Below, piece after piece: positions 49,111-59,094 of a stretch of DNA of 64,000 nt. This DNA comes from Monocercomonoides exilis PA203 (lineage: Eukaryota; Protista; Preaxostyla). The translations under genes were made by a program, and so were the position numbers. The notes beneath the pieces are model-generated. The model was not told the DNA's origin, did no database searches, and saw only the letters and a list, made by a program, of their open reading frames with translations. Location of the stretch: contig LSRY02000028.1 in the NCBI GenBank assembly GCA_001643675.2, positions 682,001-746,000 on the forward strand. The letters are read 5' to 3'. The stretch's first letter is position 1. The number at the start of each line of letters is the position of its first letter.

Positions 49111-49428
49111 TTATGCACCAAAGCCATAAAGTGTTCTTCCTTGGCGTTTGAGTGAGTAGACAATATCCATGGCGGTAACTGTCTTCCTTCTGGCATGTTC
49201 TGTGTATGTCACAGCATCACGAATGATTCCTTCAAGGAACATTTTCAAGATGATTCTTGTTTCATCATAGATAAGGTTGGAGATTCTTTTCACGCCTCCT
49301 CTGCGGGCAAGACGGCGGATGGCTGGTTTTGTAATTCCTTGGATGTTATCACGAAGCTTGCGATATCCCTTTGCTCCGGTTTTTCCAATACCTTTTCCTC
49401 CTTTTCCTCCTTTTCCACGTCCAGACAT
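49111..49428 (-). CDS. H4: Histone H4, intronless, with a variant N-terminal tail
   Basis: [24 protein letters not shown]...[32 protein letters not shown]. Confidence 0.99.
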
Positions 49429-49685
49429 ATTTTATATAATAGATTTGAGATTAATAATCAATGTTGTTCACATTTGAGATTTTATATTTATATTAGTTAA
49501 AAATATCCCATAATATATCAAATGGACATTTACCATAATTTTTAAAATTTTCTTCATTTCAAAGACTTTGCAAACATCCATCAAATTTCAAAATAAATAT
49601 TTGATTATTTCAGAAAATTTGCTAAAAATAATTTTATGATCAAAACCATATCTTTGGATCAAATTATTGTTTGTTGGAATTGTTG

Positions 49686-50277
49686 ATGGAAGATCAGGGT
49701 ATTTCACCTATTGCTGATCCTCTTGCAGGACCTAAGTTGACAAAAAAGCTATTCAAATTAGTTAAGCATTGTTTGTCTTTGATTTTTCATTGCATCTTCG
49801 ATTGTTACGTTGTTTTTTTCATAAACATAGCTGCGAAAGAAAAAACACTTCGAAGAGGTGTTAAAGAAGTGGTAAAAAGCATAAGAAAGGGGAAGAAGGG
49901 GTATGATTGACTTATATTATTTTGTGTGCTCAATTTTCATTTTTAATATCAAAAAATATTTTTTTGAAAACCTTTGTCAATGATCAAACAAACTTTCATT
50001 ATGATAAAAACTTTTTGTAATTTAAATCATAAGGCTTTGCGTTATTGCAGGAGATATCTATCCTATTGACGTCATTTCACATCTTCCTGTCTATTGCGAA
50101 AAAATGGACGTTCCATACATTTTTGTTCCTTCAAAAGCAGATCTTGGTGCAGCAGCAGGAACAAAAAGACCAACTTCATGTGTTCTTGCAACAGAACTTG
50201 ATGGACAAAACTCTCCTGACAAAATTAAACAGAAATATAAAAAGATTCGTGCTGAATTAGCTAAATTTTCTGGTTAA
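49686..50277 (+). CDS. NHP2: H/ACA snoRNP subunit Nhp2 (L7Ae family), 3 exons
   Basis: SPIADPLAGPKLTKKLFKLVK, LRRGVKEVVKSIRKGKKG, IAGDIYPIDVISHLPVYCE, DLGAAAGTKRPTSCV. Confidence 0.93.
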
Positions 50278-50429: not shown

Positions 50430-51229
50430 ATGAGGGCACACGTCGTTAATTACAGGAATGTTAAAGAAAAAGGTGAGTTAATGTTTAATGATTTTTCGTT
50501 TTAAATCGTATAACGAATGGCTTATTCATGACTTTTCAGTTGCCAAGGCAAAAGGAAATGACGTCACAATTCACTTCAAGGTAAATATAAATCAAATTTT
50601 ATGATATATTCTTTGATTAATTTTATCTTTTAAAAAAATTTTAGCAAGCACGTGAAATTGCTGGAGTTCTTCGCCACATGAAATTGAAAAGAGCAAAACA
50701 ATTTCTGTGCCACGTTATTCAGCACAAAGAAGCCGTTCCATTCCGTCGCTATAAATACGGTATTGGACATAACCCACAAGGAAAGGCATGGAAATGGTCA
50801 CAAAGCGGATTCCCTGTTAAAGCAAGCAGAGTTTTTCTTGAATTGATCCGTAACTGCGAAAGCAATGCAAAGGTATTGCATTTATTTATGTTTTACGCAC
50901 TATTTTTTGTAAATTGTCAATCAATATTTATGAATTGAATTTTTTTCAGAAAAACAATCTCAATGTTAGAAACTGCGCCATTGCTCACATCAAAGTTAAC
51001 AAGGCTCGTATCCACAGCAGAAGAATGTATCGTGCTCATGGTAGAATTAACAGTATGTTGTTGCATCTTTTAAAATGAAAAGAATTGTTTTAAATAAATA
51101 TTTTTTAATGTTTTGCTTTAAATAGGATTCAACAAAACTCCATGCCATATTGAAATGATCATGACAGAAAAAGGCATCTCTGTTCAAAGAGCAGCTCGCC
51201 GTGCAAGAAAGGAAGCAAAGAAGGAGTAA
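50430..51229 (+). CDS. RPL17: 60S ribosomal protein L17 (uL22), 5 exons
   Basis: AKAKGNDVTIHFK, HKEAVPFRRY, LIRNCESNA, RRMYRAHGRIN, PCHIEMIMTEK. Confidence 0.95.
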
Positions 51230-51625
51230 AAGACTCTCCGTTTGTTGGGTGAGTGAAATACAAACATTCTTTGTTTTCATTTTCTTTAGGACTTACCAAC
51301 ATTTCGCCTTTCTTTCGACCATATTCTTTCCTTTCGTATCAATTTTTAAAAATTTGAAGAAGGACAAATTCAATTTTTCAATTTATGTTGATTGACAACG
51401 TTTTTCAGATAATACATGAGAAAAAAAAGCCTAAAAACATGATAAATTTCTGAATGTTGATGAACAAATGAGGAGAAAAAATAAAATAAACAACAAAGAT
51501 TGTTGGTTTTGATACGAACATAAGGATGCTAAAAACACTGTGCAATGATTGTTGAAGAGTGGGCAATTTCTTTCCCATTAAGCATATTTCGTATTTGTAG
51601 TAAAGAAATTATTTGAAGGCGTAAT

Positions 51626-53907
51626 ATGCGCAGAAGATATGAAATAATACAAAAAATAACAAAGTTTTGCCCTTATGTACCTCCTCCTGAAAAGGAAGTG
51701 TGATTATGAAAATTTCTCAAGATTAAAAATATCTGTATTTATTTATGTAGATAACATTTAAAGAAAAGTGCTTCTGGTCAATACTTATATTATTCACATA
51801 CGTTGTTTTGTTTTTTATGCCTGTTTATGGAATGTCTTCAAAAAACAATTATGAAGTGTTTTTCAGACGTTCTGAAGTGAATCCTGTTCAAGGTAATATA
51901 TTTTCTTATGAAGAGTTAATTTTTTCTATTGCATAAATTTTATTAAAAGGAACTTTAATGGAAATTGGATTCAGCCCTTTTTTGACAATTGGCATGTTTT
52001 TCTCAATTTTGTCAAAAAGTGGAATCTTCGCTCCTGATTCAAATTCTAAGGAAGAAGTTACTGTTCATAATCAATTTATGAAATGTTTTTATTTAGCATT
52101 GTTTTTTATGTTCGATTAAACCTTCTGATTTTTTCTTTGCAGTTATTGGATTATCTGTTACTCTTTTCCAAGCAATATTCATGGTGTCAAACGGATCATA
52201 TGGACCTCTTAGCGAAATTGGAATAATCAAAAGAATTCTCATTGTTGCTCAATTATTCTTTTCTGGATTGTCCATGTGCGTACTGGTTTGTATTGAGAAT
52301 AACGTGATTTTCGATTTTGATTTAACTGTGATTTGTTTGAAATATGTTTATTCTTTTGCTTGTTAAAAGGACGAATTTCTTGCGAAAGGCTATGGATTTG
52401 GAGAATCTGCTATGACTGTGTACTTTGCGTTCATTCCTGCAGAATCGTTGTTTTGGAAATTATTTGCACCAATTAGGAAAACAATAATAAAGCAGCTGTT
52501 GCCAACTCAAGTTGAGTCTGCCCTTTCCGATGCCCAACCAGCGGCAAACGCCAACAAACAAGTGGAATACTTGGGGCTTGTCCCGCATGTGTTGTCTGTC
52601 TGGTTTGGGAGAGGCAAAGCGCAGACGCTCCAGATGGCTTCATCAGAAGAGCAAAAAGTGTCTCTTCTGTCGAGAATATTGCACAGAAGCGACCCGTCGC
52701 TTTCGACCGTGCGGGAGGTAGCAATTGCTCTGCTCCACATCTTCGTCACTTTGTTCTTTGTACAGATTAAGTGCAACATCTTCGCTGTCCACCACAACAC
52801 TCAGAGCGATTCGACCAAATCTGAGTCACATTCATCTCAATCATCATCATCTTCTTCTTCTTCTACAACCACTTCCGAATCAATGCGTCATTCACCAGAC
52901 AGCTCTGATAACAAGTCATCGAGTCCGAACTCGCTTAGCAGCATCGAAGCCGGCCACTCGCCGAAATCTACTCTTCTTGTGGCGACTGTTCCGTTCTTCC
53001 CTACAGCTTATCTGCCACTCGTGCTCTTTGACTTCTTCAAGGGGCTTGTAGACACACTCTCTCGCAACTTATACTTCCACTTTGTCTGCCCTTCAATGAT
53101 CAGCTCCATTTCGTCGTCTGCTTCTTCGGCTGATCTTTCAGCTCCGCTTTCTTTCTCCTCTCTCGCTTCAGACGCCCTCACATCAACCTTCTGCAGCACT
53201 AAGCCGCGTTCTCTGTTTGCTTTCCTCTACCGCGCTTTTCTTCGCCCTGTTTTGGGCTCGTGGCAGATCGATCGGGTGACTCCTCTCGGAAATGTCATTT
53301 CTCACCCAACGTCTGGTCTCTCTGGCCTTATGGCGTGTCCAGCGCTGACTGGTGCTATAAAACCTGCTGCTTCTATGACATATTTTGTTGAGCTTGTGAG
53401 CGAAGCTCTGTTTATTGTCGTGTACATTGTTGCGGTTTCTTGTTATTATTTGCCTTTTATGGACACTTCTGTTGAGAAGCTGCAAGAGGATGCAAGAATA
53501 GCACTTCAACAAAACTCCAAGGAGAATCGAGGCAAAAAAGAGAAAAGCGAAAATGAGGAAGGAAATGAAGGAGAACATTCTTCTGGTGACTCTACAAAAA
53601 TTAACTTTTCACAGGAAGAGGAGGAGGAATTAATGAACGATATTGAACATACAACACTGATTGCAGTAATCATTTCAAGCCTTTATGAAGCAATGTTTGT
53701 CATTTTGGACAAAGTCACAGGTTTGATTTTCGACTTTTTTTAATTTTATATTCGTTTAAATATAAATTATTAATACTTAATTTAACATTTATTGAATTAG
53801 GAAATACAATAAATATTTCTTCGATACTTCAATTTACCATGACTGTATCAAAAATGACAAAGCAAGCCCAGATCGATTGGCAAAACTCTAAGAAACATAT
53901 TAAATAA
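51626..53907 (+). CDS. Highly divergent Sec61-alpha/SecY-family protein; exons 51626-51697, 51751-51892, 51950-52084, 52143-52285, 52370-53720, 53801-53907
   Basis: Collinear Sec61-alpha landmarks: PPPEKEITFKEKCFWS, MPVYG, GTLMEIGFSPFLT, FQAIFMVSNGSYG, QLFFSGL...DEFLAKGYGFG, ESLFWKLFAP, VEYLG, LGSW...HPTSGL. Confidence 0.85.
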
Positions 53908-54083
53908 AGCGTTAACAATTTTTTGTTAACTTATTTTATATTAGGTCATTTCACTTTTATTTTTTAAAACTACGTTCTTCTATTTATGGCTTTGATCAAT
54001 TTTTCATTTCAAATCTTGTATTGTGTGAGCATTAATTTTAAATTTAAACTTTATGAATATTTTTTACTATATAGGTCCCTTTC

Positions 54084-57000
54084 ATGCAAACTATCCCCGA
54101 CGTTCAAGCAGACCAATTGACAAAAGATGCTTTACGCATTGGTCCGAAGGGGAAAAAACTGACGATCAAACGAGGAAAAGGATGTTATCCATTTTCTTTG
54201 GGAGAATTGTGCATTGGTCCTTATCAAATTCCTTTAGGTGGTTCATCACCTTCGCCCCCAACTGAATTCAACTTTACCCGTCATTTCAATGACCCGATCC
54301 TAACGCAAGCTGTTGCTTCTAAAAATACTGCAGTTACTCTTGCATTGCTTGCAGAAAATCCACACAACATTTTTTACAACTATTTAAGAAAATGGTTTGT
54401 TGTCTTAGTCTTTTTTTTATTTCTTATTGTTATTTTTTATCTTTTATTTTACATATTTATTTCTCAATAAGGTACACTTCATTCGCAATTCACAACGGAT
54501 TAAAATCAATTGTTGTGCAATTCGTTCATGCTGTACATACGTATAGAATGCACATACCATTCGACACAATCGAAAAAATTGCTTTATCTGATGAAAATGG
54601 CAATCGATATTTTTGTTTGTTGCTCAATAGTTTTTTATTGCAATGATATATTTTTTTCTCTTTGACGTTTTAAATGTGTTTGCATTTATTTTGTGTTACA
54701 GGTAATCGCATGTATCCTCAAGATCAGCCTGATGAAGTACCAAAAGATCCTCTTTCGTGCTTTACTTATTTAGAAATTTATCTATCACAACCACCAAAAT
54801 TAAAATGGGCCAAAACAAATCACGATATTCGTGACGGCTTTTTTAATCCGTATGAAATTTCCAATCCAATGGAAACAAAAGGAGCAGAAGTTCAAAATGG
54901 TATGAACAGTTTGAATAAAAGTTTTGTTTAATACTGTTCTTCATCGACTTATATTTGTTGATTCAGTCTCCTCATTTCCAGGAATCAACACAAAGAGAGG
55001 TCCCGTTTATCATCCATGCGCAGCAGATCGGTTTGCTCGTCTCGATGGAATTACAATCCGTTTTAGGTTTGCATAATACTTAAGTGACCTTAAATATTTG
55101 AAAATGTATTTTTACATTTTCTATAATAATAACTTTCCTGTTACACTTCTTTTCTCGGCTTTTTTGATACAATAAATATCCAGGCGCTATCGATTTCTTC
55201 TTCAAGATCGGTGGATAGATGATCCAAAAATACGTGTTCCATCACATATTCCTGGTGTGTATTTTATTCGATCTTGTTATTTATTCTTCTCAACTGCATT
55301 TTGTTTTGTTTTGTTGTCTATTCATTTTATATAAAACAATGCTCGCAACAAACTTCCATATCATTATCATCTCTACAATCACAATGGATTATTATAAAAC
55401 TATTCCAAACGTCATTTCCTGCATTATTTTTTATTTCTCATATCATTTTCCAGCCAATTCAGCTCCTCTTCCTCCATCTACTCTTCTCGAATATGTTCTT
55501 CTGAGTGAGCCTCACCTGGAGCATCTCTTGAAAGAGCAGAATGTTCTTGCCCAGTCAGATTCTCCTCACATCCCATTCGCCTTGGTGTCAATCGCCGACC
55601 CAGCGTCTTCTGCTCCCCGTGCAGTGCAAGGGCTGACAGGCTATCTTCCCTTCCTGTTTCCGTCTGCACAGACACAGCAGGGCGAGCCAGCTGCACTTTT
55701 GGGCGAGCAGAAAGGAGAAGAGAAAGATTTGGATAAGAAAGGGACGAAGGAGGAATTCATCAATTCTTTGGGAGAGGTTGACGAGAGGAAAGCGCAGGAG
55801 AACGAAATAGGAGCCAATGTGCTGTCAAATGAATCAAACATTTCAAACACTTCTTCCACCATCGCTTCTTCTTCTTCTTCTTCTTCTGATATGTCTAATT
55901 CCTCTTCCTCTCCTTCTTCTTCAAACAACGAATCACTTCCACAAGACCCTTCTTCTTCTTCTAACACCTCATCTTCTTTAACTTCACAATCTTCCTCGCC
56001 TTCTTCCTCATCATCTGCACTTTCTGTCACTTCTGCTCCTTCCTCTCCATCATCCTCCTCAGCCAATCCTTCTTCTTCCATTGCAGATGAGATGCCAATC
56101 GCACAACTGGCTGTTGTCGACTTGAACTCCAACGACGACGACCGCCTCGCCACTGAGCTTCTTCGCCTGTTTGACGAGAATTCTGAGATCAGACTGCTTC
56201 TGACAGGCATCCTGCAGTCGATGCAGAAGCAGAAGGCGATCGAAGCTGCTTTCATCAACTACATCACCACCTCCCAGCGCATCCAGCCTCTTCCCTTTCC
56301 CTCGCAATGGCTCTTCACTCAGATCCAGCTGGCCAATGTCGAAGAGATCCCTCCTCTCGCACCCAGCAAGCGCGAGCCCGACGCCGGCTCCATCTTCCCC
56401 TTCTATCCGCTGAATGGGTGTGGATGCCGCTCAGGACAGTGCACGACGCGCAGGTGTGTGTGCTATCTGGCAGGTGTTGGCTGCACCCACCGCTGTCTGT
56501 GCCACAAGGGAGGGCCTCACAGCTCCCCTCACAATGGAGCGCCTTCCATCCAGCAGGGCGCAGAGAACTCAGCCACTCCGCTGTCTGGCGGACTGCCCCC
56601 GGGATTTGGATCAACTCCCTTCCCGTTGCAGAAACTCACCCAGCTGAATGGGGTGGATGCAGGCAGCGGAGATATGATGGGCTCTTCTGCGCTGGGAAAT
56701 GGGGGAAATCCAGGTGCGGGGGGAGACAGTGGAATTGGAGGGGGTGGTGCAGGGAATATTTCTGTGGACGATGGCTCCTCTGCGTCTTCATTGAAGCTTC
56801 CAGGAATAGCTGATCTGTTTACGGCGACGCCTGTTGTGCCTACACATGCTGCACACGAAGAAGTGCTGGGGATGATGATGAATGGGAAGCTGGGTGAGTA
56901 TTTGGCCGCACAACCTTGCCGAAATGTGTTCAATGTAATCTTCCCAGCATACGGCATTCTTCAGGCAGCTCCTTGTTTTGCATCGTATCTGCGGCACACA

Positions 57001-59094
57001 GCAACGACGCTTGTGACACTCCAAACACAACACAGAAAGACACCTGCTGCTCTCCCGCGGAAAGGAAGAGGGCGGCCGAGGAAGAGAGACCACGATCTGA
57101 TTGTGCACAACCCGACAGGCATTGCAATTGCAGCGCCGAGGCAGCAGATGAGCGGGTATGGTCCGGCCGGCGGTGATGGTGGAGCAGGCGAGCAGATGCA
57201 CCAGAGTGCATCGTCTCTGTCTCTGCCGCTGCTGCCTGTGGATCTGTGGAGGCTTGTGCGGGAGAGTGAGCTGTACCACTACTGCTGCGAGGAGATGATC
57301 CAGCTGTGGGGCTTTGACGAGGAAGACGCGTGGGCCAAGGCGCAGATGCAGCAGTCGCTGATGAAGATGGAAGAGAAGGAGAACGGGATGGACGAGCTGG
57401 GAGGGCCTGGGGGTGCAGGAGGAGGGCTGGATGGGATGGGCGACGGATCGGGTGTGTCTGCTCAGATGTCTTTAGCTGCACAGCAGACGCTTACTCAGCC
57501 ACTGACTGTGGCGTGGCGCAACACAGTGCCATTGTTGGAGCTGACGCCCAGACAGACATACATTCTGCAGGAGATATTTGGTGTGCATCCTCCAATTGCT
57601 GTTGTTCCTCTGCCTCCCAACGCTGTCTATGCACATCCAGCATGTGCCCAGCTTGTCACTTCACCATTTTCCTCTTCTTTCCCAAAGATGAAGCCAGCAT
57701 CCTCTCATCTCTTACCCCAGTCTTCCCAGCAGCAGTCTGTGCGATCTCAAACAGGCTCACCCAGCTTCCCTGACAGTCCACTCTTGTCTGATGCGCCAGA
57801 TGTTCTGGACAGCGGCGAGACGCCTTATCTGACTGAGTTCTTCACAGGCGCATATCTTGCTGCTCTTCCCCCGCAGGTGCTGACCTTCTCATTCTGCTTC
57901 GGCCAGTCCTCGCAAGTGCAGCAGCAGATTCAACAGCAGCTTTCACAGCAACTCCCACAAGACCCCTCTCAAATGGCGCTCACCTCGCAACTCGCGCCTG
58001 GTGCGGCTGCTTCTGCGAACATGCTGGCAAATGCAGCACTGCGCTCAATAGACGGCCCGCCAGTTATTCGAGTGGTGGGCGATCTTTCTGTGTATCCCTC
58101 GATTGATGACACGCAGCGTGTGAGAGGTTGCATCGTCAACCGCAACGAAGTGTTCCACTGCTCCCGCTGCGACGAGTGCTTCCACGGAAGAATGTGGCAC
58201 TGCAGGCGGTGCAACAGATGCACCACTGCAATCGACGGAAAGCCGTGTGAGTTCTGCCATCCTCACAAAAGAGAAGGCGTTGTGATTCCGCGCTGGGACA
58301 AAGCACGCTCTCAGCTGCATCTGGGCATTGATGGATCTTTAAGCATCGGAGATGGATCGGCTGTGGGCGCTGTGGACTCTCAGCAGCAACAGGGAGTGAA
58401 TGCACAGGGTGAATTAGTTGGTGAGCGAGACAAAATGAAAGGCTCGAATGTTAAGAATGAAGATGGAACTGGGCAATCAGGAGTAAACTCCTCGTCCTCC
58501 TCAGCATCTCAGGCAGCTGGTGTGTCAATGGGCGTGTCGTCACAGCTTGTGTACTCAGACATGGGAGGAAGCCCGTCGCATCTGCAGTCGCAGATGATGC
58601 ACATCTCGCGCAGTGTGACTGAAGAAGGCGAGACGAGCGAGACTGACAGCGATGCTGAATTAGACTTTTCGCTGTCGCATTCGTACCAGCTTTCCTGCAA
58701 CAAGCACATGCAAAACATTGAAGCCCGGTTCAACACACTGGCCTTGGCAAGAGAGCCCATCCCGCCAGACATTCAGGACGAGGTGGCTTCGATACGCACA
58801 ACGGTGGATCATGTGCAGCAGATCTTCTCACAGCACCTGGCGTCGATGACTGCTGCACTCTCGTCGAACCAGGCTGTGTTCTCATCTTCGCAGGGGATGC
58901 TTTCTTCTTCGGGTTCTCTCTCTTCACTTCAGACGATGGAGCAGCAGATCCAAGAAGAGCAGGATGCTGTTGAGAGGAACAATCGGATGGCCGAGCTGGA
59001 AGTAACTGGCGTTGATGATGCAACGAAATGCCAGGAACCACGAAACAATGTGAATGATATCAATCTGATGGATGTTGGAATTGAAGGGCAGTGA
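54084..59094 (+). CDS. Putative DNA/chromatin-binding protein: possible N-terminal PH-like domain, CXC-like Cys cluster, AT-hook, Cys/His Zn finger, C-terminal coiled coil; about 6 exons, the last 55454-59094
   Basis: GCGCRSGQCTTRRCVCYLAGVGCTHRCLC; RKGRGRPRK; HCSRCDECFHGRMWHCRRCNRC...CEFC. The upstream small ORFs are flanked by GT-AG sites. Confidence 0.72.

Follow-up and report, generated by a model that had tools for sequence, protein, structure and literature searches.

The window analyzed here is a 64-kb stretch of contig C23 in the 82.3-Mb, 101-contig genome of Monocercomonoides exilis. It holds a six-exon gene, MONOS_16824 (XP_067725730.1; P0001), deposited under the name 'putative Secretory protein 61 B (Sec61B)'; a protein search with exon 5 returned one record at 100% identity, that of this 649-aa protein. 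The exons total 1950 nucleotides, or 650 codons, with no internal stops, and their translations occur in order in P0001. RNA contigs from four runs of a single study span about positions 51595 to 54031 of the window, skip all five introns (each GT..AG) and show no sequence differences from the gene; their depth cannot rank genes, so that they are evidence of transcription and not of expression level. A preliminary description of this DNA had proposed six exons in one open frame, which the public record and the spliced RNA contigs bear out, and had allowed that the gene might be unexpressed, which the same RNA contradicts. The exons are as follows.

51626-51697, plus strand: exon 1, residues 1-24; the intron after it is at the Sec61A site and phase
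51751-51892, plus strand: exon 2, residues 25-72; TM1 and the altered plug
51950-52084, plus strand: exon 3, residues 72-117; TM2 with S80, T84 (human T86) and pore-ring residues F79 and L83
52143-52285, plus strand: exon 4, residues 117-164; TM3 with Q126 (human Q127), and TM4
52370-53720, plus strand: exon 5, residues 165-615; TM5-TM9, and inserts in four loops (5/6, 6/7, 7/8 and 8/9)
53801-53907, plus strand: exon 6, residues 615-649; TM10 region without GSGTG

Upstream of Sec61B lie a histone H4 gene (49111-49428, minus strand), an L7Ae-family (NHP2-like) gene (about 49671-50277, plus strand) and, immediately adjacent, a gene resembling uL22 (ribosomal protein L17), recognized by eye at 50530-51230. 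RNA contigs differ from this L17-like gene at several sites, suggesting a second expressed copy elsewhere. Downstream, at 54084-59094 on the plus strand, is a long spliced gene with no Pfam match and with Cys-rich clusters like CXC or zinc-binding motifs; the RNA contigs of this gene begin about 50 bases past the end of those of Sec61B.

A SecY profile run against the genome detected a separate locus at E 5e-50 and did not detect the Sec61B gene.

Contig C11 (L001, G000:C11:1092539-1094300), minus strand: Sec61A (P0003, MONOS_2417, 471 aa), canonical Sec61-alpha

The last exon of Sec61A is 76% identical to its counterpart in Streblomastix and 70% identical to those of both Blattamonas and Paratrimastix. 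A transposase-like open frame was seen by eye downstream of Sec61A (L001:44-457). No third Sec61-alpha copy was found in a search of the M. exilis genome. Because canonical Sec61A is on a different contig, Sec61B is a second paralogue, as had been proposed, and not the sole Sec61-alpha of the genome, the case that would have spoken against that proposal. The host was likewise correctly surmised, since M. exilis is an amitochondriate oxymonad; no link between Sec61B and mitochondrial loss was found. MONOS_16824 is listed as Sec61B in a published supplement, with no orthogroup shared with Blattamonas, Streblomastix or Paratrimastix (PMC10703272), and a literature search found no study discussing the paralogue, which its depositors had already annotated.

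The homology to Sec61-alpha suggested at first reading was confirmed for the N-terminal half, where residues 6-199 matched solved Sec61-alpha at E 1e-31. The same search gave archaeal SecY at 1e-14 and, as the weakest Sec61-family match, Ssh1 at 2e-5. Against a profile built locally from 88 canonical sequences, Sec61B scored E 1e-44, in the N-half only. Pfam models PF00344 (SecY) and PF10559 (Plug) gave no match to Sec61B at E<=1, Pfam scans of its exons and of the full record returned low-complexity noise only, and a word-index search with residues 1-250 returned only the self-match. Sequence similarity alone was below significance in the C-half, where hhalign placed TM5 only; this half was placed by block scans (p=0.005 for loop 7/8), an intron anchor and fold comparison. 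The anchor is an intron inside the G615 codon that matches invariant G437, after which 34 residues follow in Sec61B and Sec61A alike. An ESM Atlas model compared with a Sec61-alpha cluster gave TM scores of 0.64/0.71 over 459 residues. Our own model, which is biased toward the Sec61 fold by the canonical rows of its 67-row alignment, had a pLDDT of 64 and a pTM of 0.58 and reached VIA Z values of up to 21 against Sec61 structures, over 414 residues to 7tm3; TM10, which is weakly hydrophobic, had a pLDDT of 41-45 and fell outside the structure-aligned range. Single-sequence AlphaFold (pLDDT 41) was unusable. By prediction, Sec61B has the ten-helix SecY fold. Conservation is uneven along it: TM2-4 keeps 28 of 46 invariant columns, TM9 keeps 2 of 22 and TM10 keeps 2 of 19. 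Identity is 44% in TM2-4 and 11-15% in TM6, TM9 and TM10, and the N-half is about 35% identical to canonical Sec61-alpha.

Among 1.84 billion representatives searched with exon 5, a single other match was found, P0002 (E 2e-5). It is encoded on a 2.4-kb JGI metagenome contig, L012, which may be from a termite gut, judging by its sample series; the region corresponding to the Sec61B plug lies off the contig. The L012 protein is a Sec61-alpha homologue (E 4e-8) and, within the M. exilis genome, matches the Sec61B gene best rather than Sec61A, a reciprocal best hit. Its TM7-loop 7/8 region scored z 15 to P0001 versus 3-8 to canonical proteins, and both genes have the G437 intron and probably also the 164/165 intron. 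The L012 protein is thus the probable orthologue of Sec61B, as judged from sequence. A neighboring gene on L012, for a TFIIIC TPR subunit, matched M. exilis with 187 bits and human GTF3C3 with 81, which fits an origin of L012 in a related protist. There was no synteny between L012 and the Sec61B locus, the L012 neighbor mapping to contig C91. An ESM Atlas search with the L012 exon returned only MFS matches below 0.9. Two metagenome scans with two-sequence alignments were blank and also missed L012's own contig, so that their blanks are uninformative.

The altered regions of Sec61B are located as follows.

51847-51891, plus strand: plug region (residues 57-71), shorter than that of Sec61A by one residue
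52793-52954, plus strand: Ser-rich insert in cytosolic loop 6/7, at the loop tip (residues 306-359, approximately)
52988-53074, plus strand: TM7 region, residues 371-399, with V382 at pore-ring Ile292 and L390 at Asn300
53075-53233, plus strand: insert in lumenal loop 7/8 (residues 400-452, approximately), containing C404 and C439
53531-53542, plus strand: probable loop 8/9 tip, G552-K553-K554-E555 versus yeast G404-K405-R406-E407
53549-53629, plus strand: acidic insert that follows the loop 8/9 tip (about 27 residues)

The plug change reported in the preliminary description is present. The apolar plug patch (yeast L63, W65 and L66) is not kept and one residue is deleted; R63 falls on the yeast L66 position in either register, and R64 corresponds to conserved Arg66. 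At the lateral-gate cluster T86/Q127/N300, Sec61B has T84, Q126 and L390. The first two equivalents were correctly described as retained, and the cluster is incomplete, as it is in M. exilis Sec61A, whose L300 aligns with human N300. Asparagine occupies position 300 in 79 of the 88 canonical Sec61-alpha sequences; the canonical Sec61A proteins of the sampled Preaxostyla (P0003, P0006, P0011, P0012, P0013 and P0016) have Leu, Ile or Met there. The loss of Asn300 previously taken to mark a specialized paralogue is therefore real, but L390 is no mark of Sec61B specialization because canonical preaxostylan Sec61A also lacks Asn300. In yeast, the N302L mutant has a tight gate and resists several Sec61 inhibitors. 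N302L stabilizes the closed channel at the expense of weakly hydrophobic signals and is suppressed when yeast L66 is made polar (L66N/S); in a survey of 264 sequences, position 300 was polar in all eukaryotes (PMC3518225). The preaxostylan loss of Asn300 is a natural equivalent of N302L and coincides with the lack of a detectable Sec62. The pore ring comprises I81, V85, I179, I183, I292 and residue 449 (10.1101/2022.08.11.503542); five of these six sites are hydrophobic in Sec61B (F79, L83, M179, F183 and V382), and the sixth is Q625, an uncertain assignment in an intron-anchored register.

TM7 carries a charged stripe, D385/K388/D392/R396, and D, K and R occur on one face in the orthologue too. 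The TM7 register scored 27.3 versus -0.8 for the next shift; another register, given by MAFFT, with N397 at N300, scored -8.3 and was rejected. The orthologue has a loop 7/8 insert of like length with two cysteines, the insert by itself showing no significant similarity. The GSGTG motif before TM10 is missing from both proteins, in agreement with the loss described for Sec61B. The paralogue-specific features are the polar plug residue, the TM7 charged stripe, the loop 7/8 insert, the loss of GSGTG and the strongly diverged C-half.

Loop 6/7 was thought to be wholly replaced by a Ser-rich insert. The insert exists, but it does not displace the whole loop: both flanking strands are predicted (residues 298-304 and 366-372), K363, after the insert, lies on Arg273 in a gap-free alignment from TM7, and K298, before it, lies on Arg262 in a TM6 register tied with one other. 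The acidic insert of loop 8/9 was also found, but the 'NRGKK' said to be all that was kept is itself the likely loop 8/9 tip (p=0.058), the best match being G552-K553-K554-E555 even when both basic columns are omitted (13.5 versus 8.0). An interim reading of Arg405 as Glu in Sec61B was dropped after this loop-8 scan. Loop 8/9 as a whole has 19 acidic and 8 basic residues. In the orthologue the Ser-rich and acidic inserts are absent and the basic residues are lost, with Pro at Arg273 and an acidic residue at the loop-8 tip, where Arg403 of Sec61A is invariant in the canonical set (88/88). Ser-rich runs occur in 7 of the 10 long open frames of the window and are common in the M. exilis genome. 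Yeast R275 in L6 and K405/R406 in L8 matter for ribosome contact, R406E abolishing binding and R275K being tolerated (PMC2171681). From these alignments, the ribosome-facing arginines of Sec61B appear to be replaced by lysines (K298, K363 and K554), and ribosome binding may have been weakened in the Sec61B lineage. The earlier suggestion of a ribosome-independent channel is not established, since the loss of Asn300 is common to Sec61A, basic sites look to be kept as lysines, and the inserts are both typical of the genome and missing from the orthologue.

Three of the five Sec61B introns are common to oxymonad Sec61A. The other two, both of phase 1 and located at codons 118 and 437 (Sec61A numbering), have no counterpart in the Sec61A genes of M. 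exilis, Streblomastix and Blattamonas. The codon 118 intron (after exon 3) is used in Cavenderia and in L014, and the codon 437 intron (before exon 6) in L014, an animal-like contaminant sequence from a bacterial assembly; the L014 protein clearly differs from the human chain. L013 and L014 are both eukaryotic Sec61-alpha genes on contaminant contigs within bacterial metagenome-assembled genomes; an outgroup scan of genome contigs returned eukaryotic contaminants only and no archaeal SecY. On the simplest reading, the duplication would predate loss of the codon 118 and 437 introns from oxymonad Sec61A, although the introns may instead have been gained in parallel or lost repeatedly. In an N-half tree (LG+G4) whose only metamonads were Preaxostyla and which held no Ssh1 sequence, Sec61B sat on a terminal branch 2.6 changes per site long and joined Preaxostyla at 84/90, unstarred. 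A position as sister to M. exilis Sec61A was rejected (p-AU 0.007), whereas one as sister to oxymonads was not (0.48); at 24 oxymonad-diagnostic sites, Sec61B had the general state at 9 and the oxymonad state at 3. With a C20 mixture model the Sec61B branch was saturated and its placement open. Taken as sequence evidence, introns at sites shared with other eukaryotes, the p-AU of 0.007 and a reciprocal-best-hit orthologue indicate that the Sec61B duplication is old, and the phylogenetic check that had been recommended agrees, in the N-half, that it is not a recent duplicate of Sec61A. Sec61B is a real, expressed and old gene, annotated as a second Sec61 and apparently unstudied.

Six-frame genome searches for Sec62 in M. 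exilis, which may miss divergent intron-rich genes, returned only low-complexity matches. Three PF02889 (Sec63-domain) loci were found, none of them a convincing Sec63: one was read as a helicase, and the other two, with open frames of 2418 and 3170 codons, look like Brr2-type helicases by size and by the published supplement. There are two Sec61-beta genes (G000:C25:2446189 and C36:419729; L020 and L021) and two Sec61-gamma genes (C25:2184651 and C19:310987; L035 and L036), each pair about 77% identical in DNA. The paired proteins are near-identical (the beta copies as compared in their C-terminal parts) and are recent duplicates; a divergent beta subunit dedicated to Sec61B was not seen.

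We consider Sec61B a candidate auxiliary ER translocon with a loosened gate, an old duplicate that would be kept under selection beside Sec61A, and we assign this reading a probability of about 0.4. It draws on sequence, models and yeast analogy, and is favored by the canonical copy elsewhere, the spliced RNA, the reciprocal best hit, the fold, the residue registers and the yeast phenotypes, as well as by a 649-codon frame left intact despite so long a branch. It is disfavored by the few invariant columns kept in the C-half, the weak TM10, Q625 at the pore ring, the loss of basic residues in the orthologue, the p of 0.058 for the loop-8 register and the tied TM6 register, and it is limited in that point-mutant rules from yeast may not transfer to a protein so diverged. 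Sec61B would be of low abundance and, most likely, still assemble with Sec61-beta and -gamma in the ER. The conserved N-half (TM1-5 with T84 and Q126), the hinge E/G and the W/G/P/G of loop 7/8 would preserve the scaffold together with half the lateral gate, and the five hydrophobic ring residues would maintain the pore seal. Sec61A, with Leu at 300 and an intact plug patch, would have a tight gate; Sec61B, with Leu at 300 and a polar patch, would open more easily, the Arg at the yeast L66 position loosening its lumenal gate. Ribosome contact would be weakened, perhaps being kept through K298, K363 and K553/K554. Sec61B may in this way admit other proteins to the ER than Sec61A does, serving clients that the latter would handle poorly.

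It is doubtful, though worth weighing first among the alternatives, that ribosome docking was lost and that Sec61B is a ribosome-independent post-translational channel or insertase or works in retro-translocation. The half that bears the ribosome contacts has diverged most, the orthologue is acidic where Arg403 is otherwise invariant, much as in yeast R406E (PMC2171681), and acidic residues predominate in loop 8/9; M. exilis Sec61B nevertheless appears to have lysine at each of the three key sites, the searches did not turn up the known post-translational motor (no Sec62, and Sec63-domain loci that look like helicases), and the inserts are not common to the orthologue. A broader form of this idea is no less tentative, namely, that Sec61B is an ancient, preaxostylan-specific Sec61-alpha derivative working off the ribosome as a post-translational insertase, as a channel for retro-translocation or as a solute conduit, its host cells apparently lacking both Sec62 and a recognizable Sec63.

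An unlikely role is that of a scaffold, half-channel or small-solute leak, in which the N-half would bind beta and gamma or other ER partners while the C-half formed no protein pore and the TM7 stripe lined a polar groove. The asymmetry between the halves (TM2-4 versus TM6, TM9 and TM10), the charges on one TM7 face in both divergent proteins, the lost GSGTG and Q625 would suit such a role, but five of six pore-ring sites are hydrophobic, T84 and Q126 are kept, loop lengths around TM9 and TM10 are exactly preserved and all helices are predicted. Less is to be said for a dispensable duplicate drifting under relaxed selection and gathering genome-typical low-complexity inserts, which we regard as improbable: the very long branch, the single relative among the representatives searched, the lack of a shared orthogroup (PMC10703272) and the local abundance of such inserts are opposed by a gene still open in frame and correctly spliced after so long a divergence, by motifs common to a distant orthologue and by conservative Arg-to-Lys changes. 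That Sec61B is a SecY taken up laterally from archaea or bacteria, or an artifact of prediction, is scarcely credible; the failure of the Pfam SecY and Plug models to match might suggest it, but eukaryotic Sec61-alpha outscores archaeal SecY, all five introns are at sites of other eukaryotic Sec61-alpha genes, and the RNA is spliced.

Few eukaryotic membrane proteins are as conserved as Sec61-alpha, and second copies that have diverged deeply are known mainly in fungi (Ssh1). An independent, old and expressed second Sec61-alpha in oxymonads would be a natural experiment showing where the channel tolerates change, and the Sec61A/Sec61B pair offers a testable division of labor, with Asn300 naturally missing from canonical Sec61A and a suppressor-type plug change in Sec61B. 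Compared with the canonical proteins (Sec61A, human SEC61A1 and yeast Sec61p), Sec61B shares the predicted fold, the T86 and Q127 equivalents, three introns and hydrophobic residues at five of the six pore-ring sites, and differs in its length (649 versus 471 residues), altered plug, TM7 stripe, four loop inserts and lack of GSGTG. Bacteria have in the accessory SecY2 a dedicated divergent second SecY-family channel, driven by SecA2; Sec61B resembles it as a divergent second channel, but a SecA2-type partner is not expected in M. exilis. The yeast prl and gating mutants (N302L, L66N/S, R406E and R275K) have natural counterparts in substitutions at the same positions (PMC3518225, PMC2171681), although the mutants are single changes in a normal channel whereas those of Sec61B sit among hundreds. 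Yeast Ssh1p, an auxiliary cotranslational translocon (PMC2171681), has its own beta subunit, Sbh2, and as far as tested is not an orthologue, being the weakest family match; by analogy, however, it is like Sec61B a divergent second Sec61-alpha beside an essential one.
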